Source: Andalucia godoyi And28 (lineage: Eukaryota > Protista > Jakobida). From it: a stretch of DNA of 64,000 bases. The stretch is from positions 1-64,000 of the forward strand of contig VRVR01000061.1 of NCBI GenBank assembly GCA_009859145.1. The letters are read 5' to 3'. The notes under the pieces were generated by a model that saw nothing but the letters and a program-made list of their open reading frames with translations, was not told the DNA's origin and ran no database searches. This document shows positions 1 through 63,075 of the stretch, one piece after another; position 1 is the first letter of the stretch, and the number at the start of each line of letters is the position of its first letter. Position numbers and translations under genes: made by a program.

Positions 1-1129
1 TTCCAAAACAGCTGCACAAAACAAATTATGTCTCATGTACCTTTCTTCCGGAGGAAGATTCATGATGTACAGCACGGCAGGAGTGTACGAAAACGATGAA
101 TATTGAAAAGGTGAGGCACCGTCAATGAAGCAACCAAAAGAAACATTCAGCACTGACGAAGATCCAGAACAGTCTCCAACTTCGACGGTCTTGCGAAACT
201 CTGGATTCATCAGTCTCAGAGCCACGACACTGGCAATGTCAAAACAGACCACCTGTTTGAGAGGCTTGAGGGAATTCCACAAACAAGCACCGCAACGATC
301 ACATGTCAAGCTATGCTCTCTGGACAGGACAAGGACTTGCTGCGGGCACAGAAGATTTGGACAAACAGCGTATGTCGTTTTGCAAATCCGAAGAGACGGG
401 AAGTACTGCAAGGACTTTTCTAAAAACAGCCGCCGAACCGTTGCGGAGCTCGAAGGAATATGTTTCTTTTGCAAGAAAGTGTGGCTGAAATGGCACAGCT
501 TCAGTATGTTTTCCGAAGAGCGGAAAGACAACTTTGCATGCTTGCTCCTCATGGAGTACAGGCACGATAAGAAAATCATTTCCGGATCATCTTTGAGGAG
601 GTCCCATCTCCATGATTGAAGAGCAACTGAATGCTCGCTGTTTATGAAGACATCAGAGTCACTTCCATCGCTAACATTTTCGAACTGCTCAATCATGTTC
701 GAATCCTGCGTCGCGTCATTCATTTCAGCAAGAACTTCCTCAAAAGCAAATGTAAGACGCAAGCGTACGTCACGGGCAAGTCGCGACATCCTTGGATATT
801 CCGCTGTTACAGATTTCACGAACGATATTCCTAAATCAAAGTGACTGACTAGTGAATCGATAAACAAAATGTTATTTACTTGGCAAATTGAAAAAACTGC
901 CAGGGATGGGTTCGGTACGAATCCGAGAAAATGAAACATCAAATTCTGTGGGCTTGTGGTTCCCGCCAAATCCTACGGGCTCACACGCGTTCCGATTGAA
1001 ATTTGCAGCCAAAAAAGTTCGTGTCTCCACGACGTATTCCTGTACTCCCGTTGATTTCACAACACTATTCTTTTCCTTTCTTCTTCTTTTTGTTTCTTGA
1101 TCTATTGCAGGAAGTGCTTTCGCAGTCAT
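1..1129 (-). CDS. CACTA/EnSpm-type (Transposase_21/tnp2-like) transposase, N-terminal part, truncated by window edge
   Basis: My translation: minus frame open from 972 to base 1, giving YAVCPNLLC...CDRCG (C4 cluster) and LNVSFGCFIDGASPFQYSSFSYTPAVLYIMNLPPEERYMRHNLFCAAVLE, matching the tnp2 motif L-x-DG-x-PF...NLPP-x-R...N. Start is ATG 939, or ATG 1129 using a 31-nt GT-AG intron (849..879) that restores frame. Confidence 0.8.
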
Positions 1130-1207
1130 TGTCCAAGTGTGAACTAGTCGTTTTTCTTTTGCAGATCATTCATAGGTTCCTGACGCTCCTGAGAATCATC
1201 AACAACC

Positions 1208-3209
1208 ATGAGCCACGTTGCTTTCCGACGGACGACAACCGCGGAACTCATGGCGCAAAAGCTGGACTACCTCGCCGAGACACTGGATCTTCTCGTTGAA
1301 AAATTCAACGTTCTTGAGGAAATGGTTCCCACGAAACTGGAACATCTTCGAACGTCCGTCAATCTCATTTGTGAAAAGCTGCACATCGAAGATCGAGCAG
1401 TCACACCAGGAATTCAGCAGGACGTCGCAGAGAGGCCGAAAAAGAAGTCGCGGTATGCTTTGCCTCTGAGCAGGCTACATCAAGTATGTGATTCTTCCTA
1501 GTTTTCAGACCAGAATTCACAACAAACTAACGAGGATGTTCAAAAAGAAAACTCTTGGAGAAATGGTTGTCGAATTTGTGCATCACCTGGGAAAGCCCTT
1601 GAATATTCTAGCGCTTGACAAGCTGAACTTGTCTTCCACGCTGCTTGACGAATGTGCAGTGCAGATGCAACGAGTGGATCCTGGTCACCCATACTTGGAG
1701 CAGGACATTCGTGCCTACGTCCGAACCAAACTTTCAAGATTGAAAGCGGACTGCCAAAACTGCCAATCAGGAGGAGCAAGGCAAGCCACGGACATCGAAG
1801 AGTTCTCAAAGAAATCCAGCAAGTTCAGTGCAAAATTTGTTTCAGTGTTGCAACGCGTGCAACTGGAAAACTGTGCACTGGAAGATGTCGGGGAGGATCA
1901 AGAGGAATTCACCAACCGTGAGAGTATTCTTGAAGGCAGCGATTTAGAAACTGATGCGCATGAGACTAACCCAGTGAGATATCCCATATCGTCAAGGGCC
2001 TTGTCAATCGCTTCGAACAGAGAGAGAGTGCAAATGACTCGAGTGTCAAACAATCCTTCAGTCGCGCAAGCTGCGTCATCAAGAATCCCAGCCAACTTAC
2101 CACGAGATGTTGAATCGGGAGCCAGTTCCTCCTGCTTTGGTATTTCCATTAGAGGCCATTCTCGCTCATCGGTGCAGGTGACGTCAAACCAAATACATGT
2201 TTCTTCTTCGACAACAAATACCAGAACAGAAGCCCAATGTGTCCAGCCAGGTGGAGGCGCTCTTTCCGCGTCGACGACCAGGCGAAGTTCATTACATCAT
2301 TCAAGGAGAGACGTTGTTCCTCTACATGGCCATGAGAATCCAATCATCAGCAATCCAACACGTTTGTCGATCATACAGTCTTCTGAAGATGTGGCATTGA
2401 TGGTCAGGAATCGACTGCCCAGAACAAAGAGTGCCGGTTCTGAATCTTTGGTGCCTCCTGTGCCAAAGGACGACCTGACAGCGGAACACATCGAGTTTCG
2501 AATATTGGAGTTGGAAAAGGATTGCCAGGAAATTCGAAAACAAAAGGAAGAGCAAATTGCGGAACTGAAAAAAAGGATTCAAGAAGAAGCGGGTCCAAAT
2601 ACGGCAGTTGCGCTGCCGACTGAAGAGCCAAAAAGTTTGTGACCAACAAGATGTACATCAGGAAGACTAATTAAAAAAAAGTTGCTCAGCATGATGCATA
2701 GGTGATGTGGAACACGCGAAAGAAGTGCACTATTTGGTGCGATTGTGGCGTCACCGTGTATACCCAGAGCACGCTTTGGTGATGCCTGCATGTGGTAGAG
2801 TAAAAGAAAATGATGACGACTTGGTGATGTAATGGTGAGATTTTTATTCAATAGTGATCCCACATGGAGCAGCGAAACGTCTGAGTGGACATTCTATGAT
2901 GGATGCGACAGATCGGGCACAATGTTCGGACATACCATGGACTCTGTGTTCCATGATGCTTTCCAGGCAGTCGGTCGAACAAAGCATGAAGTATGCCAGC
3001 TTTTGTATATCAGGCGGGATGCATGCCATGCACAAGTAGAAATTCCCATGATTCAGAGGGTGGACGGCCTTTCCGCAAGCTCTGTTGAGTGGGCAATCGC
3101 CCTCCGTAACCTTGCAAGGCAAAAAGCAGAACGTCGAGCCGAAGCAAACGTTGGTTCGTCGAAGAAGAAGAGGACGGCAGATTCAGATGCTATCGTCATC
3201 GATGATTAA
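1208..3209 (+). CDS. Transposon-associated accessory protein, 627 aa, join(1208..1483,1509..2634,2702..2828,2855..3209)
   Basis: Three GT-AG introns (25, 67, 26 nt) join ORFs 1208..1501, 1488..2642, an unlisted exon and 2832..3209 in one frame (1884 nt). The 67-nt intron has a CTAAT branch-like site. Ser-rich middle, short coiled coil, C-terminal KKKR (NLS-like). Confidence 0.6.
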
Positions 3210-4606
3210 AAATGTGACTTTGCGAGAAAACGATAAATGTTGTTTGGTTTGTGTTCCTTTATTAATAGGAAGCTTGCGTCACTTGATGCAGCATGCTGTG
3301 GAGTGTGTTTCAAACATTTTGGACTTTAAGGGGCCACCTGAGCACGTCTCCCAAATTTCCTGCGCTTTTCGCCTTTTGCTCCATAAACATGATACCAGCT
3401 GCGTGAACTGACGAACCTGCACCTGAATGTGAAATGATCAGAGTGTTTTTCGCTCTATCAGTTTGCTCGGGGACATGCTTCTTTTCACACACGGAATCAG
3501 ACGAACACGAAGGACTCAACGCCCGATGCGGATCAAAAACACGTAGTGAATATCCGCTGTTCCGCACTGGTGATAATTCATTAGAATGCTTGCAAAATGA
3601 AGACATTTTGCTTCGATCCTCACGTACACACGGACCAGAGGCTTTGCTCTGCATCACACAGCATGCAATGTAATTCGACAGACACGGATGACTGAGGCAT
3701 TTGAAGAATAAACAGTAAATTAGTGTACATAATTTCTCAGAAAGTTAATTCCGAACTGCTATTAAATTTGGAAAGTTCTGGTGCGACAGAAGTCTGCGAG
3801 CTGCTTCGCTGTCAACTTTCCTGAAGACAAAACAGCGTGATCTGTCGAACAACGTCTTTCAAGAAACACGCAGCATCATGAAACTCCAGAACACACTATT
3901 GAACAGAAATCGCGAAGGAATACAAACAGTTGGAAAGAAGAACCTTCAAATTGTCAATTTAAATTTCGAATGTGCTTCGCATTGGCGTCGATCAGAAACG
4001 TCTCCGATGCCATCCAACAAAAACACAAAAAAATCAAAATACGAGTTCACCTGCGTAGTAAGATGGATAGACAATTTGTTGATGTACAAAGAGCCGACAC
4101 AGGTCAGTTTCCAGGTGCAATACCTCGACTTTGTCGTTCGATGTCGGTTGGAAACCGATCGACATGCACGACAGGCACAGTAGCCAAAATGTTGCTAGGT
4201 GAAACATCCGAAACATGCAACCTGTTACTTTGCTGGCAGGAGCATAACAGCTGGCAGCCAACGGATCTCGCGAAAGTCAGGCGAGCAACATTTCATTGCA
4301 CTTCTTTTCAATTCGTTTTCTTCTGCAATTGATGATTCGAGCGACACAAACCCGCAGTTTCTCTTGCGTTCTCTTGCGTCTGAATGCTCGAAGTCAACAG
4401 GAAGTGAAAATGAAGCGCTCACCATCACAGGGAAATGACCCGACAATGACCCGACCTGCATAATAAGCTGATGACAACCTTCCAGGCCTCCCTTTTCCCT
4501 TTGGGCATCGTTCCTTTCGTTCTCCGACAACGAGTTTAATTCTCTTAGATAATAGCATTGAGCGAACGTACCTTGTTCTTCTTGTTTACATATTTGTCGA
4601 ACACTC

Positions 4607-6589
4607 ATGACAGACGTTCTACGTTATTTTACCGACGTTAAGGAGTTTCCTTTCAATGAGGTCACGTTAATGGAGGAAGATGCCCTTGTTGACGATTTGC
4701 TCCAGCAGTTTTGTCACTCCTTGTGGACGGAGCTTATGGCGGTGACTAAAAAAGCAATTCACACTGCCATCGTAAAAAGGGTGAGGGATATTTCGATTTC
4801 TTTGACGAAATCAAGTGTGGATGATACATTTATTTTGGAAGAGAATAAGAAATCGCTCGAAGATCAAGTCCAGAGTCTACAGCACTTTTTTTCTCTTCTT
4901 TTGGAATCGAAAAATGACGATGATATTCCGACGTATTCGATGGCGCTTCTTGCTCTTGTGCGCTATAACGAATTAGCTAAGAGTGAGACAGTTCCTTGCG
5001 TGGGGTCTTTAGTGCCTTTAGCAAACTTGGTCCTCAATGTACCGCCAAACAGTCGTGACTTTTTCATCCTGCAGTGTGCGTTTGCATCTTCGTTGTTTCG
5101 TTTGGGATATCAAGATGCCGTTCAAAATAATTTCCTTTCGCTGAAATTCAAAGATTTCGTTTTTGCTCACTGGTCAACCTTTTCTGTTCAAGAAAACGAT
5201 GTTTCCTTTTGTTTTGTCGCTCATTTTTTCAAACGTTTGTTGCGGTTCGAACGGTACCTATACAAATCCCACATTCCAGCTGCAGATGTTTCCATTTTTG
5301 TACAGGATTATCTTCTGTCCCGTACTCCAGATATGTCATCCTCGGCTTTCAATGCCCTACTGGGCTGCTGTTTGTTTGGACTGCATATCATTCGACGGGA
5401 AACTGTTGGTAAGAAGAACGAGCTTGAATTTGTCCGTAATTCCATTTGGGAATTGCTAAATAACGTTGTTCAGTCGAATGTGAATCAGATGGATGCAGTT
5501 GGAATGCTCTATTTTGTGAATACTCTGTGTTTGGTGCTCTCCCCATATCCTGGACGTAAGTGGCCGAAAGATTTGCAAACACTTTTCTACAAGACAAACG
5601 TCAAATGTTGTCGCCTATTTGTACAAGCTTCCATCGGCAGGGATTTCACCACATTCTGGTCGTGGTTGTTCACTGTGTTGTCGGACGGTCTTTTCAAGTG
5701 CGAAGATGATGTGTTAACATCGAAGATTTCTTCGTCGACCATGCGGCTGATAAACTTGGTCATGCGCGTTGAAAATGACCGTGACCCTGGAAAGGGTACG
5801 CTGTTTTTCTTGCAATTCGGCCTGCTTCCCGGATTGGAAGCGTTTCGTCGTCTGTCAGCGTTTACCGGCATAGAGAGAGAGTATATGCTCGACGTAGACG
5901 AATGTTTAACGACACTGCGAAGCTCAGCGAAAGATGCTTCTGCGAAAATGCTTCTTGGTGTTGCTAGTGATATGCTTGATGATGGATTACACTATGCTGA
6001 GATTTTGCGGTTTTCATTAACAAACTCTGAAGATCCCCCAGAGTGCCACGCTGACGAAGAGGATGCCAAGTTTTCCTCACGTCTTTCCACTTGGCTGACT
6101 GCTGTTGTGGGATTGAATGCATTTCCTGCTCGAGTTCTGTCGACTTGTTTTGCTCAGTTTTCCAAGGATCCTGGCATCGGAACTTCGAAGTTTGACGTAA
6201 TCCATGTATTATGCTGGTTAGTTGGTGCAGGGAGTACTAACCCGTGTGATTTTGTGCAGGACAGCCTTGACGATGAAGTGGAGTGCACACTTCGGTCTTT
6301 GGTGCGTAATCCGCAAGATGTTGATGAATACGCTGACCAGCCTCTTGATGCTTCCAGTTTTACTGTTGCACGTCGCTTACTCTTGAATGTGAAACGAATG
6401 GAAATCTCTCTTCCTGTTCTATCTCGCTTTGAAGGGAAAGTTGTGATAGAATGGGGCGATGATGTGTTCACAATCAATGCCGATAATACTGTGACAGGCT
6501 GGGTAGATAATGTTTCCTACGGCTGTGCTCCAGAAGGAGAGTTCTGGAAGTTCATTGTGAAGTTCGGTGTTGGCCGGTTAGATCCCTAG
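4607..6589 (+). CDS. Uncharacterised 660-aa largely helical protein with a small C-terminal alpha/beta domain
   Basis: Long intact ORF. C-terminal QDVDEYADQPLDASSFTVARRLL...LPVLSRFEGKVVIEW resembles a small bacterial family (recalled pattern WDxYGAxP..A..FL..P...G.I.LEW); not verified. Confidence 0.65.
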   Translation: MTDVLRYFTDVKEFPFNEVTLMEEDALVDDLLQQFCHSLWTELMAVTKKAIHTAIVKRVRDISISLTKSSVDDTFILEENKKSLEDQVQSLQHFFSLLLESKNDDDIPTYSMALLALVRYNELAKSETVPCVGSLVPLANLVLNVPPNSRDFFILQCAFASSLFRLGYQDAVQNNFLSLKFKDFVFAHWSTFSVQENDVSFCFVAHFFKRLLRFERYLYKSHIPAADVSIFVQDYLLSRTPDMSSSAFNALLGCCLFGLHIIRRETVGKKNELEFVRNSIWELLNNVVQSNVNQMDAVGMLYFVNTLCLVLSPYPGRKWPKDLQTLFYKTNVKCCRLFVQASIGRDFTTFWSWLFTVLSDGLFKCEDDVLTSKISSSTMRLINLVMRVENDRDPGKGTLFFLQFGLLPGLEAFRRLSAFTGIEREYMLDVDECLTTLRSSAKDASAKMLLGVASDMLDDGLHYAEILRFSLTNSEDPPECHADEEDAKFSSRLSTWLTAVVGLNAFPARVLSTCFAQFSKDPGIGTSKFDVIHVLCWLVGAGSTNPCDFVQDSLDDEVECTLRSLVRNPQDVDEYADQPLDASSFTVARRLLLNVKRMEISLPVLSRFEGKVVIEWGDDVFTINADNTVTGWVDNVSYGCAPEGEFWKFIVKFGVGRLDP

Positions 6590-6795
6590 ATATGGAAAGA
6601 CGCAGGGGAGTGAAATGTGTTGAAGAAGTAAAGGTTTGATACGTTTATCGCAAAAGTTACTGGCAATAGTAGTGACACGTCGCAACCGCAGCATTATTGT
6701 AAATCAGATTGTCATCATGGAATCTTGCAATGAAATTGATTTCATCACTCAAAATTAACAAGACATGATTGTTTTTGAAACACATACCAACAAAA

Positions 6796-7206
6796 TCACG
6801 CCGGATAGACAGCAAGGCTTCTCAAGGCAATCGAAACCTTCTTAATAACCACGTTTTCCGGATCAGTTGAGTTTTGAAACCAATGACCACATCCGATTCC
6901 AGTGTGCGATGGAAGGTCCCGAGACGGACGATGAACAACTGCGAAGTTCTGCGAACGACATGCGCCAGCTACCATTCGAGCAGCTCCATTGCCTTTCTCT
7001 CTACCCCTCGTAACTTGATTGAAAAGCGAAACGGCAGACGCTGCAGAGTTGATCATATCTGAGCGGAAAACAGACAAGTGATAATTGTCGGCAATGTCTC
7101 CTGGATTTAATACGAACGCGGTGGCTCTGAGTGTTCCAGAATTAGAGAAATGCGAAGGTTTTGTAATACGAAAAATTAGGGTAGAATCTGCAACAGGGGT
7201 TGTCAT
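6796..7206 (-). CDS. Small (136 aa) putative ADP-ribosyltransferase-fold protein (Tse2/RES-like, R-S-H type)
   Basis: From ATG 7206: IFRITKPSH (R13), AF...D...LSVFR (S45), VVHRPSRDLPSHTGI (H101). The spacing fits small bacterial ART-like proteins. The ORF can extend to an upstream ATG at 7317. Confidence 0.55.
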   Translation of the reverse strand: MTTPVADSTLIFRITKPSHFSNSGTLRATAFVLNPGDIADNYHLSVFRSDMINSAASAVSLFNQVTRGREKGNGAARMVAGACRSQNFAVVHRPSRDLPSHTGIGCGHWFQNSTDPENVVIKKVSIALRSLAVYPA

Positions 7207-7444
7207 AATGTTGTCCGTCAGAACTGCATGGATAGGATTGCAACAAATCTTTAGAAAGAACCGAGAAGCAAACGAGGCAGTGCGAAATCCATGGTCATCA
7301 ATGGCAGGCAAGCTCAACTGTCGAACATGTTTGCGTCAAGCACACTCATCTATCCTCATTTGAAGCTAGACAACTGCAATTTTGTTGCAGGTTTCATTTA
7401 TCGAATGTGAACTCCTACAGACATGCCGGTCGGAAACTGTTCGT

Positions 7445-7472
7445 CACTGCTACAGTGTTCGCGAGTGTAGTG
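7445..7472 (-). repeat. Candidate CACTA terminal inverted repeat with subterminal palindrome
   Basis: Minus strand reads CACTACACTCGCGAACACTGTAGCAGTG; contains the CACTG-N3-CAGTG palindrome. The partner TIR is outside the window. Confidence 0.35.
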
Positions 7473-7595
7473 ACAGAAGAACTGTTTCATCTCACTGATG
7501 ATGGTGACAACGATTAAGGCACAATGTGCGATATCGGAACGAGTGACGAATAATAAGAGGACATCGTGATGAATGATATCTGGGGCAGATTTTAC

Positions 7596-8685
7596 TTAAA
7601 CCTTGGCAAGTCCAGCGACGACCTCGGATTCGATACCGCACTCGTTCTTTCCACGAAGAATGCGGAAGTATCCGTTCTCACCCCATGACGTGTTCCACGA
7701 GTTCTTGATGATCCAGTACGGAACGTTGTTCTCAACTCCCCATCCAATCATCTCGACGGCATGGCCTCCCAAAAACTGACCAGACTTGTGCTGGTAGATT
7801 CCCGACTTGTAGTGTGCAAAGTCCTCATAGACAGAGAAGGCAACGGTAACAGGACCGTGCGTCTGGATTTCTGTCTGGATCTTGGCAACGTTCGAGGAGA
7901 TGCCGTATGAAGAAGCTGCATAGTAGAGGGTGTAGGGCGACGAGTCCTTGCAGGTTTTTGCAGTGTTGCAGGCAGGGGTCGGTTCCTCGGAACATCCAGG
8001 GTGCTGGCATGTTCCCATTTCAGATGGATAACACGGCTCCGAAGGAGAGCCGTTCTGGCTGAGCCAATCCCAGGCAGCGGAAGGATATCCTCCATCGCAG
8101 GATCCAGCAGAAGAGCACGAAACAAGGTCCTGGGAGCAGACCTGAACAGTGTTCTGACCCTTGGACTGGATGCAGAAACGGTCCGACAAGGTTTCCACAG
8201 TGCTCACAGCCCAGCACGATCCACAATGTCTAGCATTCGAAACGAACAGTGAGTGATACTATAAAACACAATGCAGTGCAGTGCAATGCACTTCAAACCA
8301 AAGCACAGGATTAATGGGAAGGAGAGGGAAAAGAAGAGAGAAAAGGGATTCGGCAGAGTGCTAAAGACACATACCCTTGGTCACGGACTGCGCCAACGCA
8401 GTTGGGAGTCTGTTGACGCCAGTCAAAAGAGGTCGGGATGTCTTTGAGGGTGATCGGGTCGACGATGGGAAGACCGTGTTCTCCGTTGGTCAAACGAGAT
8501 CCGAGGAGCTTCTTGAACTGTGAAACAGACATTCCTTCCAAACGATCGTTGCGTCCAGCAGTCCAAGTCGACTGCGTGTCCGCGTTGAGCTCGGCAACAC
8601 GCGCATCATTCAAAATGCGGTCCGAGTCAGAGAGTGCGAATGCAACTGCACTGAGTGCAACAACCAACACAATGGCCTTAATCAT
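7596..8685 (-). CDS. CTSB: Cathepsin B-like cysteine protease, complement(join(7596..8229,8375..8685))
   Basis: Signal peptide MIKAIVLVVALSAVAFA and propeptide. Splicing a 145-nt intron (GTATGT...CTAG, 8230..8374) gives QGHCGSCWAV. GGHAV and KNSW catalytic motifs present. Confidence 0.95.
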
Positions 8686-9081
8686 GTTTCTTGCTCTTTT
8701 CCCAGTAAGAGTTGAGCAAATCGGAAAAGAAAGAAGAAGAAAAAATGGAGAGTGACAAGAAGAAGAGGGAAGAGCAGTGGTGCGATGAGGGACAAAACGG
8801 CTGACAAGCACGGATGAGAGGTCGCCGCACAAAAAGTGCCCGACACAGTCTACTCGTCCATTGAGCGTAGCGCATAGATGCACGCAAAAAACCCTAAACC
8901 CACACAAAACAAAGATAAAAATTGCACAAACTCGCCTTGATTGGAAAGCACTCATCTACAGTACGTCGACTCTGCCACAGCGACAGATCTGCGGCGATGC
9001 ACGCTTTCTCCAACCGCTAGCCAAAACATGCATCATTATTGATCCAAAGAGTCATCGCTTCTTCTTGCTGCTCTCGGCCTC

Positions 9082-10291: not shown

Positions 10292-11452
10292 TCACTCATC
10301 AGCGGGCAAGGGATCGAGTCGGTGGGAGCAGCAGGAACAAGAGGAGTTGTGTTTGAGAAGGGAAGCATGTGCCTTGAAGGCTGGATCCGAAGGAACGAGC
10401 TTCAGGAAATCGAGAGCTGTGCGCGCAAGAAGCTGTTCTTTATCCGCAGAACTAAGCTTCTTGGACGCCTCGATGAGTGTGCCTGGGACATCTTCCCCGA
10501 GAGGGAAAGGATAGTCCGTGCCGAGCATGACCCTCTCAGATCCAAACATGGAGACCAGAAACTCGAGGGACCGCGGATCATGGACTAGCGAGTCTACGAA
10601 AAAGTGCTTTTGCGCAACGTACTTTGTCGGAGGATGCTTGTTGTCCACAGCACACAAATCCGGTCTTACCTCCCAGCCGTGCTGCACGCGACCAAGACAG
10701 AACGGAAACGACCCTCCGCCGTGTGCGAGTCCAATCCGCAGCGTAGGCAGTCGCTCCAAAACTCCTCCAAACACCAGGGAGCACGCGGCAAGAGCAGTCT
10801 CTGCAGGCATCCCGACGAGCCACGGCGTCCAGTACTTCTTCATGCACGCCGAGTCCATGTACCAAGGGTGGATGAAAACAGCGCATCCGAGATCCGCGGC
10901 CGTTTGGAACACCGGGAACAAAGAAGGGTCGTCCAGGGTCTTTGGAATGACTCCCGGTCCACCGACATGCGAGGCGATTTGAATGCCTTTCAGCCCCAGC
11001 TCGTTCACACATCGCTTAAGCTCGAGCACTGCGAGAGCAGGGTCCTGCAAGGGCACAGTGCCGAGTCCAACAAAGCGATCGGGATGCGCCCGGCAACATT
11101 CTGCGAGATGGTCGTTCAAAAACTGGCTCACGATCAGCCCGTCCTGCGGCTTTGCAAAGTACGAAAACAAGACCGGGATTGTCGACAGCACTTGCACAGA
11201 CACACCCTTCTCGTCCATTTCCACGATTCGAGCCTGTACATCATAGCAGTTTCGTTCCACCTTGCGGAAAAACTGACCGTCGTCATACACCATGTCCACA
11301 GTGCGATCTGGAAGATGCTGCAGCGTCATGAACCCACCATACCCAAACTTCTCCTTCCAGTTTGGAATGTGTGACGGCATCAAGTGCGCGTGCACGTCAA
11401 TGCGGAACAGCGGGTCGCGCGTCCCCATCCCTGGTGAACGATATTCAGACAT
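10292..11452 (-). CDS. ACMSD: 2-amino-3-carboxymuconate-6-semialdehyde decarboxylase (amidohydrolase 2)
   Basis: IDVHAH metal motif, KEKFGYGGF, VFIHPW, AHGGG, MLGTDYPFPLGE. Confidence 0.95.
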   Translation of the reverse strand: MSEYRSPGMGTRDPLFRIDVHAHLMPSHIPNWKEKFGYGGFMTLQHLPDRTVDMVYDDGQFFRKVERNCYDVQARIVEMDEKGVSVQVLSTIPVLFSYFAKPQDGLIVSQFLNDHLAECCRAHPDRFVGLGTVPLQDPALAVLELKRCVNELGLKGIQIASHVGGPGVIPKTLDDPSLFPVFQTAADLGCAVFIHPWYMDSACMKKYWTPWLVGMPAETALAACSLVFGGVLERLPTLRIGLAHGGGSFPFCLGRVQHGWEVRPDLCAVDNKHPPTKYVAQKHFFVDSLVHDPRSLEFLVSMFGSERVMLGTDYPFPLGEDVPGTLIEASKKLSSADKEQLLARTALDFLKLVPSDPAFKAHASLLKHNSSCSCCSHRLDPLPADE

Positions 11453-11962: not shown

Positions 11963-13483
11963 ATGTCAAAACTGGTGGCTGCTGAGCGTGTTCCTGCGAA
12001 TCTTCCGGCGAGTGTGGCTGCAGACGGCCGGGCGTCGTCTCTTCCGCTCTTGCGAAACTATATCAATGGAGCTTTTGTGGATTTCTGGGGCAGCGATGAG
12101 GTGTTGGAAGATGTGGATCCGTACACGGGGCAGGTGATTGCGTATCTGCCGAGATCGAAGAGTGAGGATGTTGACAGGGCTGTTCGAGCAGCCGACCACG
12201 CACACCGCGTTGGAGAATGGAGAAAGAGTAGCACGCAGCACAGAGCTCATGCGCTGGAAAGAATCGCACACTTGATTGAGAAACATCTCGACGAGTTTGC
12301 GGCGCTGGAAAGTGCAGACACCGGAAAACCGATCACGCTTGCAAAAAACATGGATGTTCCGCGTGCGGTCGACAACTTTATCTTTTTTGCTGCTTGCTTG
12401 CGTGCGTACTCCAACGAATCCACACTGCAAAATGCACCCGTGCAGGCGCTGCATTACACACACCGGACTCCGGTCGGTGTGTGTGCGCTAATTGCTCCGT
12501 GGAACTTGCCACTGTATCTCATGACGTGGAAAATTGCGCCGTGCTTGGCAATGGGGAATACCTGCGTCGTGAAGCCATCGGAATTCACGTCCCAGACGCT
12601 GCATCTGCTGGTGAGGCTGATTCATGAAGCACACATTTTACCTCCAGGAACGCTCAATCTTGTGATGGGGTATGGAGCGGATGTCGGTGCTGCTATGACC
12701 AGCCATGCTCTTGTGTCCGCGATCTCGTTTACTGGTGGAACCGTCACCGGGCAGCGGGTGGCAATCGCAGCTGCGCAAAGCTTCACAAAGGTCTCTCTTG
12801 AACTCGGCGGGAAGAATGCAACCATCATTACCGATTCGACTGATTTTGAGAACCCGGAAGTCATGGCCACGCTGGTTCGCGCGTCCTTTGCGAATTCCGG
12901 TCAGATCTGCTTGTGCGGATCGCGCATTCTCGTTCAGCAATCGATATACGACAAATTTGTGCCAGCATTTGTTTCGCATGTGAAATCATTGCGCTTTGGA
13001 GATCCTCGCGATCCACAAACGCAGGTGGGTCCTGTTATCTCGGCTCCGCACGCAGAAAAACTAGAGATGATCGTGGAGGCTCTTCGGAACACGGGAGGAC
13101 GAGTGCTGTGTGGCGGGTCCCGCATTGGATACGCGGGATTCCAGCCAACCGTTGTGGAGGGTGTCGATCATGGCCTCGTATGCGACGATGAATTCTTTGG
13201 ACCTGTTGTAACTGTGCATCCATTTTCGAATGATGAAGACGCGATTCAAATGGCCAATGCTTCTCGCTACGGTCTTGCAGGCTCTGTATGGACCAAGGAG
13301 ATCGATCGTGGACACAAGATTGCGCAAGGCATGGAAACAGGAATGGTGTGGGTGAATTGCTGGCTTGTACGCGACCTGCGAGTTCCTTTTGGCGGTGTCA
13401 AGGATTCTGGAGTGGGTCGCGAAGGAGGCCAGTACTCGCTGCGGTTCTTTTCTGATGAAAAGAACATTTGCATTCGGTTGTAG
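11963..13483 (+). CDS. ALDH8A1: 2-aminomuconate semialdehyde dehydrogenase (ALDH8A1-like)
   Basis: LRNYING, MDVPRAVDNFIFFA, IAPWNLPLYLMTWKIAP, LELGGKN (Glu), GQICLCGSRI (Cys), WVNCWLVRDLRVPFGG. Confidence 0.9.
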   Translation: MSKLVAAERVPANLPASVAADGRASSLPLLRNYINGAFVDFWGSDEVLEDVDPYTGQVIAYLPRSKSEDVDRAVRAADHAHRVGEWRKSSTQHRAHALERIAHLIEKHLDEFAALESADTGKPITLAKNMDVPRAVDNFIFFAACLRAYSNESTLQNAPVQALHYTHRTPVGVCALIAPWNLPLYLMTWKIAPCLAMGNTCVVKPSEFTSQTLHLLVRLIHEAHILPPGTLNLVMGYGADVGAAMTSHALVSAISFTGGTVTGQRVAIAAAQSFTKVSLELGGKNATIITDSTDFENPEVMATLVRASFANSGQICLCGSRILVQQSIYDKFVPAFVSHVKSLRFGDPRDPQTQVGPVISAPHAEKLEMIVEALRNTGGRVLCGGSRIGYAGFQPTVVEGVDHGLVCDDEFFGPVVTVHPFSNDEDAIQMANASRYGLAGSVWTKEIDRGHKIAQGMETGMVWVNCWLVRDLRVPFGGVKDSGVGREGGQYSLRFFSDEKNICIRL

Positions 13484-14504: not shown

Positions 14505-15440
14505 GCCTCAAATACCTTTCAACAACAAAAACAACAAGCAGTCCAGCAACTCGGCATCAAAAAACGGAAGTGAAACCCGTAAAAAACGAAAGAACAGGAT
14601 AAACGTGCTGTGCGGGGGAGGAAACCCCAAGGGAGAAATGAAAAAAAAACGGAAATAACGTCGCATGAGGCATTCCCGTCGTGACGACAGTCGCCAATCT
14701 GTCGTAGTCCATCCAGGAGCTCAAGCGAGGGCGGGGAAAAAGAAACGGACCGACAAAAAAAAAACGAGAGAGAAAGGCTTTCCATTTTACCCGCATCACG
14801 CGGCATTGGAAGGACGACCGAGGCGGAGAGGTTCGACTTCAGCAGTGGAAGTGTCAACGTGACTGGGCTAGGTTAACACTGGCCCGTGTCAGTACTGCTC
14901 ACAATGGACGGCGTTTCTTGCGACAAAAACGTGTGTGTGTCAACAAGAATGGACAAACCAGCCAAGAAAGTTAATTTAAATTTTTTATGGAAAAATGGAT
15001 CCGTACTGGAATACACTTGGGTTCTCTTTCTCTCACTCCATACCTTTTGACGCAACATAGTACCACACAGGTTTTTTCTTCTCTTCTTCTTTTGTTTCCT
15101 TTTCTCCCTCAACACGCTGCTCTCTGTCGTCCTTTTTTGTCTGTCTGTCCCTCGCTTTGCTGAATAGACTGTGCATTTCTTTCTGTCCTCTACCTGTCTT
15201 GAATTGCAATGGACTTCCCGCTTTTCGTCTCCACCACCCCTGCATGATCAACTAGTTACGAGACATCCCAAAAGACAGAGCTTCACACATCGCACACCTC
15301 CACACATCACACACGCCGCCTGAAGATTCTCCTGTCGAATTGCGTTTCTTTTTGTACTACTTGAAGTTTTTGACATCGTCATCAGCGTCGACACCACCAC
15401 TGCCACTTAACGTCCCCTTTCTTTGTTGTACATTCAATTA

Positions 15441-15918
15441 ATGGGTGAGCTGCTGGTTCCTGGGACTCCGTTGGAGACTCGCTGGAATCTGTTCCTCGTG
15501 GTTCTCTCTATTTTTCTGTCTTTATTCGGATCATTTACAGCTATGCAACTCGCCTTGGCGGCAAAGTCCGCAAGGGCCGATGCAAAGTCCAGACATGCAC
15601 TGTACGTTTTGTCTGCGTTCTCTCTTGCGTGCTGCGGTGTCTTTGCATTCCACTTTTTGGGCATGTTGGCTCTTGAATTTCACCCGTATGTTGAAATTCA
15701 GTATGACGCAAAAATGACTTCGCTGTCGCTCATCTGCTGTTTGCTGTGCTGCGAGGTGTCCTTGTTCGTGCTGATCTACGGCAGAAGAGATCGCTTGGGC
15801 GCTGTGGATGTGCGCGGGGCAGATCACATATACTGGGTCCGAAACCGCAGGAATTCAATGTCCGAGCTGGATGTTGTACAGCGTAATACCCCCGGACTTC
15901 CTATGGACTCTAGCTCTA

Positions 15919-15952
<34 letters not shown>

Positions 15953-17636
15953 TGGTTCTGCTTCGAGCGATTCCGAGGGTCCACTCGACGGCTCCGACAG
16001 TTTGGAGCGGCAGCAAATGCTGAGCCAATCCAGCCAGGATGGAGGTATGCAGTCCTCCACCCCGGACGGCGAGGATCCAGAAATTGCTGAAACGCAGTCG
16101 GAGGATTCGGAAGTGGATAACTATGTGTTGGACATTTCGGACGGTCGAGTCTCGCACTTTGAACAGCCGCCGCTGCATCGCAGGAGAGGACTGCATCGGC
16201 GCCATTCGTTGGACATGGCCTCGCATCGTGGACGCGGACCCCATGGAGAGCCAGTACCCCCACTTCCTGCATTCAGCAGTGACCGACATCCCGGTCGTCA
16301 TCCAGAGCACCGCAGCTACTCCAGTCCTGCGGCTCCCGAATATCACTTGCGATTCCGGTGGCCAGTTCGCTGGGCATTGTGCTTCAAAAAGGGCGCGCAA
16401 CAAATGCTGGGCCTGAGCAGCATTGACAAGTTCCGGTATCTGTCAGTGTCGTTCCTATTTGCAGTGGGTCTCGGAACGATGCACTTCATGGGAATGGCCT
16501 CGATGACCGGGCCGATTCGAGGTACGTACGGAATACCTCTCTTGGTCGTGAGCCTTTTGATTTTGGCAGTCAGCGGGTTCGTCGCTGCGGTGGCGTTTGA
16601 TGTTGTCAGCAACGCTCGACAGATTGTGTCCTTCTCCACAGGCATTTCCTCGGGAGTCGCGCTGTTCCATTACATTGCGATGCTCTCCATGGACTTTGTG
16701 TACGATCCGTTTTCCAAGCGGAACGTTGATAATTCGTCCGCATGGCTCTACATGTCCAACTTGTCTCGATCGGATCTCGCTGTGCTTGTGATTGTGATTG
16801 CGCTTCTTGTGTGCCTGTTTTTGCAAGGTATCCAGTCGATTTTTGTTTCGCGCGTCAACAGCGAATTAGAAACGATGATGGCAGAGCTTTCGCGAGAAAA
16901 GGCGAGGTCCGAAGCGCTCCTCTTGAACATCCTTCCCAAGGATGTCGCGGAGATCATGAAGAAACACGGTGGCTCGCATCTTATCCATCGCAAGATTGAA
17001 TCCTGCAGCGTACTCTTTTGCGATCTCGTGAACTTTACTCCTCTCGCTGCCACCCTGACATCCTTCCAAGTAGTCTCCATGCTGCACCGCTTGTTTTCGG
17101 GCCTGGATGACATCTGCGAGTCCTACGGGATTGAAAAGATCAAGACAATTGGCGACTGCCTCTTTGCACTGTCCGAAGGGCCGAACCATGCGACACGTGC
17201 TCTCGAGTTCGCACTCGCTGTTGTGGATGTCGTGGAGAAGAAGTGGTCGCACAAGGGACTGCAGATTCGAATCGGAGTGGCCAGCGGGTCTGCGTCCGCC
17301 GGTATTGTAGGGCGGCGGAAGTGGCTGTACGACTTGTTTGGCGACGTCATCAACGTCGCCAGTCGGATGGAATCCACGTCTTTTCCGCAGTGTGTGCAAA
17401 TCAGCAATGCGACATATGAACTGCTTCTGGGAGAAAACGCGGTCTCGCCGTCATTACGCTTTCGATTCTCCGACTTTGTCCAACGACGGGTGCTTATCAA
17501 GGGTAAGGGGTTCATGACCACTTGGGTCTGGGTCCACCCGAGCCAGTTTCAGATTCGCAAGCTTGTGGAATCCGAGGAAGAAGAGCAACCCCCCGATCTC
17601 ATCTCTGTCGACGGTGCGTCGGATCTCGATTCGTAA
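15441..17636 (+). CDS. MHYT-domain membrane sensor fused to class III adenylate cyclase
   Basis: Three MHYT-like motifs (AFHFLGM, TMHFMGM, LFHYIAM). Cyclase motifs VLFCDLVNFT, KIKTIGD and YDLFGDVINVASRMES; the Lys/Asp pair indicates ATP specificity. Confidence 0.9.
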
Positions 17637-17748: not shown

Positions 17749-17833
17749 TGCACGCGCTGGGATTCGAACCCAGGCCCTCGAATGAAGAGTCGAACTTGAG
17801 TCGACCGCCTTAGACCAACTCGGCCACACGTGC
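17749..17833 (-). tRNA. tRNA-Leu(CAA)
   Basis: Full cloverleaf; anticodon arm GTCGA-CTCAAGT-TCGAC, long variable arm, TTCGAAT loop, followed by a T6 Pol III terminator. Confidence 0.95.
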
Positions 17834-20318: not shown

Positions 20319-20383
20319 GCCTCTGACACCAGCCTCTGACACCAGCCTCTGACACCAGCCTCTGACACCAGCCTCTGACACTG
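20319..20383. repeat. 13-bp tandem repeat (GCCTCTGACACCA)x5 in a divergent promoter
   Basis: Four perfect copies plus one near-perfect copy, no spacers. Confidence 0.95.
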
Positions 20384-40770: not shown

Positions 40771-42138
40771 CTATTTGAGCATGAGCAACACAATCAAAAT
40801 GACAAGTGCGATGATTGCGGTGATGCGCTCGAGCTGCGAGCGGAGCTGGAGCTGGCGAGTGGCTTCGTCGCGGCCGACACGTACGCCCTCTGCACGCCCC
40901 TTTGCTTCAGCCTCGGAGCGCTGTGCCTTGATGGAGGCCTTGAGCTGACGGACAGCGGCCTCACGCGCTTCAATGCCCTGCAGCTTGGCGTCGAGTGCAC
41001 TCTCCTTCTGCTCGAGTTTGGCTGCAACCTTGTCCACATTTGCCTTCTGGGCCACGGCGTCCTTCCTCGCCTTTTCTACGTCGTTCTGCGACCGCGCGAC
41101 AGCTTCCAAGGCAAGCTGCACACGCTTTTCATTCACCTGGATTCCAGATTCGCGCGCATCCAGTGCCTGTGCACGCGCATCCATCTTTTTCTTCTCTTCC
41201 TCCACGCTCGCCTTCGATGCAGCTTCGCGCTGCGCAGCTTCCGACTTTAAGCGCTCGCTATCCTGATGCGATTGAACCACGAGCTGGACATGGCGGCGAT
41301 CCAGCTCAGCAGACCGCGCATCCAAGCTGCGCTTCTGGACATCTAGTGCAGCTCGCTTCTCCTCGAGAGAAGCTCGATCCTTGTCAAGCGACGCAAGAAG
41401 CACAAGCTGCGAAGACAGCTCCTGCTCACGAACCGAAATCTCTTGATGCAGTCTCTCCAGCTCCTGCTCTTTAGCATCCACTGCCGACTGCTTCGCGAGC
41501 ACATTCTGGTCAAAGATGCGCAGGCTCTGCTCTCTTTGGTAAAGAGCAGACAGCTGCTGCTCAATCGCACTTTGCTTTTGATGCATAGTCCCCATTTGCT
41601 GATCCAACGTGGCTTGCTTGCTTGCGACGGCCTGTTCCTTCTGCTCCAATGCACTCTGGCGCTGCTGCAACCCATTCATCTGCTCACCAACTGAGCGCCG
41701 CGTATCTTCCAGTGCGTGCTTGTCCTTTTCCAGTGCGTGCTTGTCCTTTTCCAGTGCGTGCTTGTCCTTTTCAAGCCCGGCCTTGATGCTCTCAACAGAC
41801 GCCTTTTCCTGCTCAATCCACGATTTTTCCTGCTCGAGCCACGTCTTTTGAGATTCCCACAGGTTGATGTCCTTGTTCAAGGCATCGCGATCCATCTGAA
41901 GCGTGTTCTTCTCCTGCAACAGCGCCTCTCTTGCAAATTCAACGCCCTTCTTTTCATCCTCCATCGCAAGTTTTTCTTGTTCAGTCAGCCTCTGCAGTGC
42001 AGCAAGCTCCGCCTTTTCCGCATCCACCATTGCTCTCGCTTCCTGGACACTCTTGAGCTGCTCCCCAGCCGTCTTTTTGAGCTGCTCGAGCTGCACGCGC
42101 TTGGTCTCGAGCGCCTGTTCCTCCTCCTCCATCGCAAC

Positions 42139-50097: not shown

Positions 50098-50098
<1 letters not shown>

Positions 50099-50177
<79 letters not shown>
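50099..50177. repeat. (TG)n microsatellite
   Basis: Long TG run with one GG interruption. Confidence 0.95.
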
Positions 50178-53758: not shown

Positions 53759-53830
53759 GGGAGATGCCGGGAATCGAACCCGGGACCACTCCGACCCGAA
53801 CGGAGTATTCTACTACTGAACTACACCTCC
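53759..53830 (-). tRNA. tRNA-Pro(CGG)
   Basis: 72-nt cloverleaf; anticodon arm CTCCG-TTCGGGT-CGGAG, TTCGATT loop, C73, T-rich trailer. D-loop AGTAGTA lacks the usual GG. Confidence 0.88.
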
Positions 53831-54054
53831 AAGCGACACGATGCCTCTGCTTGCTCTTCTTGATGAGTGAAAATGATTTCGCGCATCCTTTTTTACGGTT
53901 TCTGTTTTCATCGTTGTCTTTTCTAAAGCACTTCACGACTTTTCAACATTTACTTGCATTCATTTATTGGTTTGGTTTGGTTTTGTTTTGTTTTGGCGGA
54001 TTTTGGTTCATTTACGTTGCGTTTTTACAGCTGGATTTTACAAGTTGGAAAAGG

Positions 54055-55095
54055 ATGTCGCGACCTGAGCATGCGGCGCCGCCAGAGATTGTATGTGTAT
54101 TGCTTCTTATGATTGGTGGGGTGTCTCCATTCGGCGACAGAGATTTGCGGATAGGAAGAATGCGTGTTGTAAATGATCCTAATGCGAGTTATTTGCTGTA
54201 TTGGCTTTGCTTGATGGGTTTTCTTGATTGGTTTGGATTCATGAATTCGCAGTTTTACAATGTTGACGAGGCCGCAAAGTATGCAATGAATTCGCGGATG
54301 ATATACATCCAGAGTGTGATGGCTGAGCGCGCGCTGCAGCTTTTGAACTTGAAGGATGAAAATGCACTGATTCTTGATATTGGGTGTGGATCTGGACTGT
54401 CTGGCGAGGTGCTGTCGAACAAGGGGCTTGCGTGGATCGGAACCGACATCTCGTCAAGCATGCTCTCAGTCGCAATGCAACGTGAAGTAGACGGAGATGT
54501 CATTCTCGGAGACATGGGCGAAGGACTGCCATTCCGCCCGGGTGTGTTCGACGGCGCAATCTCCATCTCTGCACTCCAGTGGCTGTGCAACGCAGACTTT
54601 ACAGACGCAAACCCTTACAAACGATGCATGAAGCTGTTTACAAGGCTCTACGCAGCTCTTAAAAGGGGAACGCGTGCTGTGTTCCAGTGGTATCCCGAGA
54701 ACACCAAGCAGATGGAAATGGTCACTGCTGCTGCGATGAAGTGCGGGTTTACGGGAGGTATGATCATTGACTATCCGCACTCCACGAGAGCAAAGAAGTA
54801 CTTTTTGGTTCTGTTCTGCGGTGCCTCCTCGGATCCAAGCGAGGAGGCGCCAAAAGCACTTGGGACGAACGGAGAAGAACCGGACGAAGGAGACGCCGGC
54901 GCAGAAGGCGAGGGTGCACCGACCTCTGCGTCTGTTCTCGGGGCATCCAGAAGGAGAGTATCAAGGAGAGGGAAAAAGGTTTCAGTCAAGTCCAGGGAGT
55001 GGATCCAGAGCAAGAAGGACAGACAACGCAGACAAGGAAAGGAAGTGAGAAGCGACTCCAAGTACACTGGCAGAAAACGCAAGGGAAAGTTCTAA
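54055..55095 (+). CDS. BUD23: 18S rRNA m7G methyltransferase, join(54055..54090,54253..55095)
   Basis: MSRPEHAAPPEI spliced to FYNVDEAAKY via a 162-nt GTATGT...GCAG intron; LDIGCGSGLSG; C-terminal DSKYTGRKRK. Confidence 0.95.
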   Translation: MSRPEHAAPPEIVCVLLLMIGGVSPFGDRDLRIGRMRVVNDPNASYLLYWLCLMGFLDWFGFMNSQFYNVDEAAKYAMNSRMIYIQSVMAERALQLLNLKDENALILDIGCGSGLSGEVLSNKGLAWIGTDISSSMLSVAMQREVDGDVILGDMGEGLPFRPGVFDGAISISALQWLCNADFTDANPYKRCMKLFTRLYAALKRGTRAVFQWYPENTKQMEMVTAAAMKCGFTGGMIIDYPHSTRAKKYFLVLFCGASSDPSEEAPKALGTNGEEPDEGDAGAEGEGAPTSASVLGASRRRVSRRGKKVSVKSREWIQSKKDRQRRQGKEVRSDSKYTGRKRKGKF

Positions 55096-62990: not shown

Positions 62991-63075
62991 GCACGTGTGG
63001 CCGAGTTGGTCTAAGGCGGTCGACTCAAGTTCGACTCTTCATTCGAGGGCCTGGGTTCGAATCCCAGCGCGTGCA
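62991..63075 (+). tRNA. tRNA-Leu(CAA), identical to the 17749..17833 copy
   Basis: Same 85-nt sequence followed by AGTAA and a T-run. Confidence 0.95.

Follow-up and report, generated by a model that had tools for sequence, protein, structure and literature searches.

Canonical CACTA transposons are delimited by terminal inverted repeats (TIRs) of the form CACTA...TAGTG and by a duplicated target site (TSD) of 3 bp, possess subterminal repeats and encode a transposase together with ORF2, a protein of unknown function (PMC4158355). The transposases of the EnSpm clade are characterised by a second D, by C(2)C and H(3-4)H motifs and by a catalytic E, and the gene-carrying fungal representatives of the clade, the TET/JBP-encoding EnSpm/Plavaka/KDZ transposons, are 8–15 kb long and contain one or two extra protein genes (PMC12730594). 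Here, these systems are compared with the left edge of a 64,000-nucleotide stretch of the jakobid Andalucia godoyi And28 (GenBank assembly GCA_009859145.1, contig VRVR01000061.1, positions 1 to 64,000, referred to below as the window), which a DNA transposon of the EnSpm/CACTA superfamily (CMC clade, Transposase_21 type), or a remnant of one, probably enters from the left. The minus-strand frame that runs from position 972 to base 1 very probably corresponds to the N-terminal third of a transposase of the EnSpm/CACTA type, as judged from its motifs and from profile searches, and most probably belongs to a very divergent member of the EnSpm/CACTA (CMC) superfamily. The transposase gene lies at the edge of a block (positions 1 to 7472) of open reading frames (ORFs) without detectable relatives, which a sequence-only reading of the DNA had assigned as a whole to a single cargo-carrying element.

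With respect to motif spacing, the fragment is nearer to fungal-type Transposase_21 proteins than to those of plant CACTA elements. The arrangement DG-x2-PF-x8-P-x6-NLPPE is identical in the fragment and in two fungal Transposase_21 loci retrieved from metagenome contigs (L007 and L011), and fungal-type members also possess an upstream C..C...C..C cluster in the same order. The plant CACTA elements (En/Spm, ATENSPM, Caspar) encode the same type of transposase, although the corresponding spacing in the fragment is 1–2 residues shorter, while in both plant and fungal members the segment between the cysteine cluster and the DG motif is approximately 40 residues longer than in the fragment. Moreover, the fragment lacks the W that precedes the conserved P in the EnSpm/CACTA family (SYTP instead of S/T-x-WP) and is otherwise too divergent from these transposases to be detected by phmmer. 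The locus resembles plant CACTA elements in having nearby ORFs without an assigned function and a TAGTG sequence available as a candidate terminus at 7468–7472, but differs from them in the lack of a Transpos_assoc N-terminal domain (Pfam), the lack of subterminal repeats and the location of the neighbouring ORFs on the strand opposite to the transposase. Unlike in the fungal TET/JBP elements, no TET/JBP domain or other recognisable domain was found in the ORFs of the block, and the fragment matched no Plavaka family in Pfam, nor any KDZ (Kyakuja-Dileera-Zisupton) or CxC family even at E-values up to 10.

Features of the putative transposase gene

The sequence-only reading had described a minus-strand frame open to base 1 and hidden from the ORF track, and both statements proved correct. 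The frame comprises 324 codons, begins after a stop on the 972 side, contains no stop up to base 1 and includes ATG codons at 937–939 and 787–789; it is absent from the ORF listing because it runs off the end of the window. The four-cysteine cluster noted in that reading is present (CPNLLC-x15-CDRC) and would be the counterpart of the C..C...C..C cluster that precedes the catalytic domain in the EnSpm transposases of plants and fungi. The DGxxPF...NLPPxxR motif is also present, in the form of DGASPF and NLPPEER, and its similarity to the family exceeds chance (23.0 bits, E 1.7e-6; see below). The first catalytic Asp is presumed to be encoded at 121–123. The coordinates of these and other features of the block are listed in Table 1.

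Table 1. Features of the block at the left edge of the window and of its host flank
Feature	Position	Strand	Remarks
Probable N-terminal part of an EnSpm/CACTA-type (Transposase_21-like) DDE transposase gene	972–1	-	Open for 324 codons; the gene would run leftward beyond the window
IPSSSATVRRL	427–459	-	Ahead of the cysteine cluster
Cysteine cluster C-x4-C-x15-C-x2-C (CPNLLC...CDRC)	292–363	-	Aligns in order with the cysteine cluster of the profile
First-D block, LNVSFGCFIDGASPFQYSSFSYTPAVLYIMNLPPEERYMRHNLFCAAVLE	1–150	-	Domain 3 of the match to the plant and fungal profile: 19.6 bits, profile positions 146–195
DGASPF	106–123	-
NLPPEER	40–60	-
Two ORFs of 97 aa and 384 aa	1208–1501 and 1488–2642	+	Divergent from the transposase; coding-like codon scores
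125-aa orphan ORF	2832–3209	+	Same frame as the 384-aa ORF
660-aa orphan ORF	4607–6589	+	Predicted all-helical with a small beta C-terminus; strong coding signal
173-codon orphan ORF	6796–7317	-	First ATG internal; coding-like codon score
CACTAC (plus strand GTAGTG), followed by ACA	7467–7472	-	Candidate right terminus; 124 bp past the cathepsin B stop
CACTACACTCGCGAAC			Candidate right-terminus sequence; its inverted partner would mark the left end
Cathepsin B-like cysteine protease gene (host flank)	7596–8955	-	Two exons, GTATGT..TAG intron; Peptidase_C1 E 2.6e-52

According to the favoured interpretation, positions 972–1 would encode the first 324 codons of the transposase, in which a variable N-terminus is followed by the C-x4-C...C-x2-C cluster and then by the first catalytic block (DGASPF...NLPPEER), and the remaining DDE motifs (second D, C(2)C, H(3-4)H and E) would be located further left, outside the window. 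In analogy to known family members, the complete protein would bind TIRs beginning with 5'-CA(C), excise the element and re-insert it with a 2–5 bp target duplication. The gene would reside in a stretch of approximately 7.5 kb (1 to ~7500) composed of intact orphan ORFs that do not share the GC-rich codon bias of the neighbouring host genes. These ORFs may serve the element as accessory (ORF2-type) genes or may simply be lineage-specific genes that lie next to it.

Profile and similarity searches

The assignment of the frame is supported by custom profiles, which proved decisive where the Pfam result alone is no proof. A plant hidden Markov model (HMM) was built from 8 of the 64 aligned plant CACTA transposases (supplementary file 6 of PMC4158355), spanning the region from the cysteine cluster to just beyond the first catalytic block, and was compared with all 761 stop-to-stop segments of at least 50 amino acids (aa) from a six-frame translation of the window. 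In this comparison, 17.1 bits (E 1e-4) were obtained for the fragment, as opposed to 5.9 bits for the runner-up segment, and none of 5000 shuffled versions of the fragment reached its score, the shuffle maximum being 9.5 bits. When two fungal loci were added to the plant sequences, the fragment reached 23.0 bits (E 1.7e-6), and the best of the 760 other segments only 4.6 bits. In both custom profiles, the cysteine cluster of the fragment is collinear with that of the profile, although its score is weak (0.5–2.4 bits). The significant similarity to the first-D block, combined with the collinear upstream cysteine cluster, thus bears out the earlier identification of an En/Spm-type transposase.

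The fungal sequences were obtained by scanning metagenome contigs with a degenerate DNA motif, which yielded three fungal-type loci (L007, L009 and L011). The scan pattern was one N too long, which placed its last block out of frame, and consequently intact relatives were missed and pseudogenes with a 1-bp insertion were caught. For the profile, L007 and L011 were each entered as two frames joined by hand over the frameshift, with X at stops. The pieces of both loci are classified as Transposase_21 by Pfam (E 2.4e-4 to 3.9e-11), and L009 is a near-identical copy of L007. The three loci are Transposase_21 pseudogenes that appear to be of fungal type by sequence (L007 1519–1593, minus strand; L009 168–242, minus strand; L011 1171–1245, plus strand). 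Their reading frames contain stops and are shifted by 1 bp between WPIIL and NLPP, and in L007 a long acidic GDEDED repeat precedes the transposase.

The observations that weigh against an EnSpm/CACTA element at this locus concern the family and similarity searches, the composition of the block and the structure of its presumed ends. The window covers no more than about 50 residues of the catalytic domain; the greater part of the DDE domain, the TSD and the left end are situated outside it. The Transposase_21 family of Pfam (PF02992; profile length 213) has a gathering score of 28.6 bits, and the last 50–56 residues of the fragment score 12.4–12.7 bits (E 0.07–0.09), which is below this threshold. 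Since small, probably meaningless ORFs of the block reach Pfam E-values of 0.005–0.25 against unrelated families, the Pfam E-value of the fragment is at noise level. The 292-aa and 136-aa versions of the frame gave no Transposase_21 match in Pfam. On the other hand, Transposase_21 is the only Pfam family reported for the fragment, and the match covers profile positions 29–72 of 213 (approximately 44 within the window), as expected. A score below the threshold is to be expected from truncation and divergence, because genuine fungal Transposase_21 fragments of similar length (70–104 aa) also fall under the Pfam cut-off, at 20.8–23.4 bits. The search against Transposase_21, which had been proposed in the sequence-only reading as a check, fell short with the Pfam model and succeeded with the custom EnSpm/Transposase_21 profile (23.0 bits).

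Similarity searches were likewise negative. As a 263-aa query, the fragment found no significant relative among 1.84 billion representative proteins (phmmer), and it had no match in a word-indexed search of 5.8 billion proteins, among JGI metagenome contigs or IMG/VR viral contigs, or among PDB sequences. No paralogue of either the fragment or the 660-aa ORF was detected in the protein collection that contains the EukProt proteome of this organism, and the fragment itself is not in the annotated proteome. If the assignment of the transposase is true, the gene represents a very divergent EnSpm/CACTA lineage from a eukaryote without a close sequenced relative, and indicates that transposase genes of this type escape standard annotation and large-scale sequence searches alike. 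For now, the locus amounts to an incomplete transposon fragment of an ordinary kind, located where the window begins.

Orphan reading frames of the block

The remainder of the block is occupied by ORFs for which, as far as they were searched, no significant relative was found in protein collections, family libraries or PDB sequences. The 660-aa ORF has no Pfam, NCBIfam or PHROG family, no match among PDB sequences and no relative in IMG/VR, and among 5.8 billion proteins it matches only itself. It forms a one-member cluster in EukProt, so that the annotation of the source proteome includes this ORF but no paralogue of it. A single-sequence AlphaFold (AF2) model of this protein was unusable (mean predicted local distance difference test score, pLDDT, 39). 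For the 384-aa ORF and eleven smaller ORFs of the block, only noise-level matches were obtained in the Pfam, NCBIfam and PHROG families, PDB sequences and viral contigs searched. No capsid, polymerase or integrase domain was identified in the ORFs of the block by Pfam, and no DUF3435/tyrosine recombinase 'captain' domain, as expected at one end of giant cargo elements of the Starship type, was present in any ORF of 1–7600.

The 97-aa and 384-aa ORFs may constitute one gene, interrupted by a 64-bp GTATGT..AG intron at 1484–1547, and the joined product of 1208–2642 would be Ser-rich with a coiled-coil C-terminus according to prediction. The ORF at 6796–7317 may be spurious, or else an exon. At 4606–4609, the ATG codons of the 660-aa ORF on the plus strand and of a 127-aa ORF on the minus strand (4225–4608) overlap in a CATG palindrome; the latter ORF probably is not genuine or else represents an exon belonging to another feature.

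Base composition of the block

The lower GC content claimed for the block was corroborated. The GC content of the block amounts to 0.451, as compared with at least 0.492 in every other 7.47-kb segment of the window, and the maximum-likelihood change point is located at approximately 7600, which coincides with the cathepsin B stop codon (log-likelihood ratio 65). The difference is also visible at third codon positions (GC3), with values of 0.41–0.49 in the ORFs of the block (0.49 in the transposase frame) and 0.52–0.68 in 17 host ORFs. Overall, GC is 0.542 in the long host ORFs and 0.456 in host non-ORF DNA, and 0.459 and 0.431 in the ORFs and non-ORF DNA of the block, respectively. The GC content of the block ORFs therefore equals that of host non-coding DNA, and their dinucleotide signature is that of the host, with relative abundances of 0.42 and 0.41 for TA and 0.99 and 1.06 for CpG in the block and in the host, respectively; both facts count among the adverse observations. 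The block is not foreign but merely lacks the GC-rich codon bias of host genes, because its composition matches that of host non-coding DNA and the dinucleotide signature of the host. Weak codon bias fits selfish, young or weakly expressed genes equally. The only link between the orphan ORFs and the transposase is their shared composition, which is a sign of weak codon bias, not of shared mobility.

Across the whole window, TA is uniformly and strongly depleted (0.41–0.42), TG/CA are in excess and CpG is near 1. CpG decay or repeat-induced point mutation as the cause of the low GC content was rejected on the basis of the observed/expected CpG ratio (0.99 in the block as compared with 1.06).

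The absence of microsatellites from the block, to which the sequence-only reading had drawn attention, is real but of little weight. About 20 loci with a period of up to 6 are present in the other 56 kb of the window, which corresponds to an expectation of approximately 2.7 in the block and a probability of about 0.07 of finding none, and the first 6 kb of host DNA are likewise free of microsatellites, which become numerous past 13.4 kb.

Candidate termini and repeats

The CACTAC hexamer that had been regarded as the end of the element beside the first host gene is indeed present at 7467–7472, but it carries no statistical weight as a signal, because the hexamer occurs at chance frequency. It is found on the minus strand four times in the first 9 kb (at 3543, 6669, 7467 and 7809) and 14 times in the window. 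In the regions 6590–7600 and 800–1500, only two-copy matches of 9–20 nt were detected, which is the chance level, and the 9-nt repeat GTAGTGACA at 6669 and 7467 corresponds to the chance expectation for 1 kb. The remaining adverse observations belong here: positions 1–9000 contain no notable inverted or direct repeats, subterminal arrays were found neither in the 900 bp next to 7472 nor ahead of the transposase start, and the 64-kb window harbours no second copy of the block or of the putative terminus and no derivative resembling a miniature inverted-repeat transposable element (MITE). In addition, ORFs are packed to approximately 155 bp from the proposed end at 7472, on the strand opposite to the transposase.

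Extent and nature of the element

Among the other explanations of the locus, the likeliest, although less likely than not, is a compact element whose right end lies between approximately 790 and 1200 (for example, at the TAGTG of 850–854), with ordinary lineage-specific host genes of weak codon bias occupying 1200–7500, beside which the element would have inserted by chance. The 660-aa ORF is annotated as a singleton, while the transposase is absent from the proteome, which would fit repeat masking of the transposase alone. The dinucleotide signature of the block is identical to that of the host, its gene density is host-like and candidate TAGTG sites are available. However, there is no compositional break from 972 to 7500, an end situated 60–400 bp from the start codon leaves scant room for the usual subterminal regions, and no repeat structure is found near the start of the transposase.

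The larger element envisaged in the sequence-only reading, in which the whole of 1–7472 and additional length to the left form one autonomous CACTA transposon with its right end (...GTAGTG) at 7472 and ACA as the TSD, is unlikely. In such an element, the ORFs at 1208–2642, 2832–3209, 4607–6589 and 6796–7317 would be co-moving accessory or cargo genes. It is equally doubtful that the locus represents an autonomous transposon of the EnSpm/CACTA type that exceeds 7.5 kb, stems from a poorly sampled protist lineage, encodes a transposase too distant for single-sequence searches and contains two to four intact, lineage-restricted accessory or cargo genes, including that for the 660-aa helical protein. 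GC and GC3 stay uniformly low between the transposase and the change point at approximately 7600, beside the first recognisable host gene, the intervening ORFs examined have no detectable relative, the TAGTG at 7468–7472 is correctly oriented, and EnSpm elements with extra genes are known (PMC12730594). Nevertheless, the claim of one element of more than 7.4 kb ending at 7472 was not upheld, as the terminus is at chance level, with CACTAC occurring four times on the minus strand in the first 9 kb, and is accompanied by neither subterminal repeats nor TIR partners. No arrays occur within 900 bp of 7472, where the sole exact 9-mer repeat is expected by chance, and no terminus-like copy is present elsewhere in the window. 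The ORFs that approach the end to about 155 bp on the strand opposite to the transposase are unlike the canonical CACTA anatomy, and the composition is that of host non-coding DNA, as any weakly expressed or young gene would show. The annotation of the 660-aa ORF as a singleton in the proteome of the organism also argues against a mobile block; single-copy cargo genes had been named beforehand as evidence against the element, and the 660-aa ORF is indeed single-copy within the annotated proteome, but a single-copy element would look alike. If the block does move as one unit, it would be a DDE transposon that ferries intact orphan genes in a protist, and thus a protist counterpart of the fungal gene-carrying EnSpm elements, and its mobility would bear on the spread of lineage-specific genes.

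It is improbable that the frame is a domesticated or relic gene, present once in the host genome and derived from an EnSpm transposase whose mobile element has disappeared. Such a gene would be consistent with the intact 324-codon frame, the lack of a paralogue in the proteins searched, the host-like dinucleotides without signs of decay and the failure to detect termini in the window. However, its GC3 of 0.49, as compared with 0.52–0.68 in the host, and its codon usage are unlike those of host genes, it is missing from the annotated proteome, and its N-terminal region is too divergent for any match, which is more typical of fast-evolving selfish genes.

Chance resemblance, in which the frame would be no transposase and the block simply a set of orphan genes, is very improbable. 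The noise-level Pfam E-value of 0.07 and the lack of a match for the 263-aa query in 1.84 billion proteins are compatible with it, but the custom profiles returned E-values of 1e-4 and 1.7e-6 with a gap of 11–18 bits to all other segments, no shuffled sequence reached the score, the cysteine cluster aligns in the same order as in the family and the motifs are spaced exactly as in its fungal members. An integrated virus or foreign island (giant-virus, polinton-like or bacterial insert), which might be suggested by a group of orphan ORFs that lies at the window edge and deviates in GC, is extremely unlikely given that three ORFs have no relatives in IMG/VR contigs, that there are no significant PHROG or NCBIfam matches and no capsid, polymerase or integrase domain, and that the dinucleotide signature, including TA depletion at 0.42, is that of the host. 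An EnSpm/CACTA-type transposon or its remnant, extending leftward from the window, remains the preferred reading of the locus.

Host genes and other features of the window

The 64-kb window is gene-dense and eukaryotic, with long ORFs on both strands that mostly lack introns, although canonical GT..AG introns are present. Recognisable host genes include those for Peptidase_C1, Amidohydro_2, aldehyde dehydrogenase (ALDH), an MHYT-guanylate cyclase, a PAS hybrid histidine kinase, a JAB protein, Sir2 and V-ATPase subunit H. Pfam domains were found in 8 of 10 host ORFs, and exact look-ups identified EukProt as the source of at least three proteins of the window.

Two neighbouring host genes form a divergent pair, consisting of an Amidohydro_2 (ACMSD-like) gene at 10292–11452 on the minus strand and an aminomuconate-semialdehyde-dehydrogenase-like ALDH gene at 11963–13483 on the plus strand. 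The best non-self match of the ALDH (61 % identity) is to a short JGI metagenome contig, and another metagenome/SRA contig is 54 % identical; the remaining matches listed are approximately 48–54 % identical, and those that are named belong to Acidobacteria, Myxococcota and other bacteria. One SRA contig shows the same neighbourhood as the pair in the window, in the order Amidohydro_2, RidA and ALDH (L002). The pair may represent bacterial-derived genes of kynurenine or aromatic degradation.

A 737-aa ORF at 15423–17636 on the plus strand encodes bacterial-type MHYT sensor repeats fused to an HNOBA segment and an adenylate/guanylate cyclase domain, an architecture that is unusual for a eukaryote.

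Rfam and ARAGORN scans of the window detected only three RNA genes, all of them host tRNAs. Two are tRNA-Leu(CAA) genes, at 17749–17833 (minus strand) and 62991–63075 (plus strand), which lie 45 kb apart on opposite strands and are identical over all 85 nt, with 99 % identity over the aligned 103 nt that include approximately 10 bp of flank on each side. The third, tRNA-Pro(CGG) at 53759–53830 on the minus strand, covers the initial 67 bases of a 443-aa ORF at 53764–55095 on the plus strand; the true start of this ORF is probably further downstream. Finally, perfect tandem repeats are found at 20319–20381 (13 bp x4.8), 41707–41772 (21 bp x3.1) and 50098–50177 (a (TG)40 microsatellite), and the 21-bp array sits within a long ORF.

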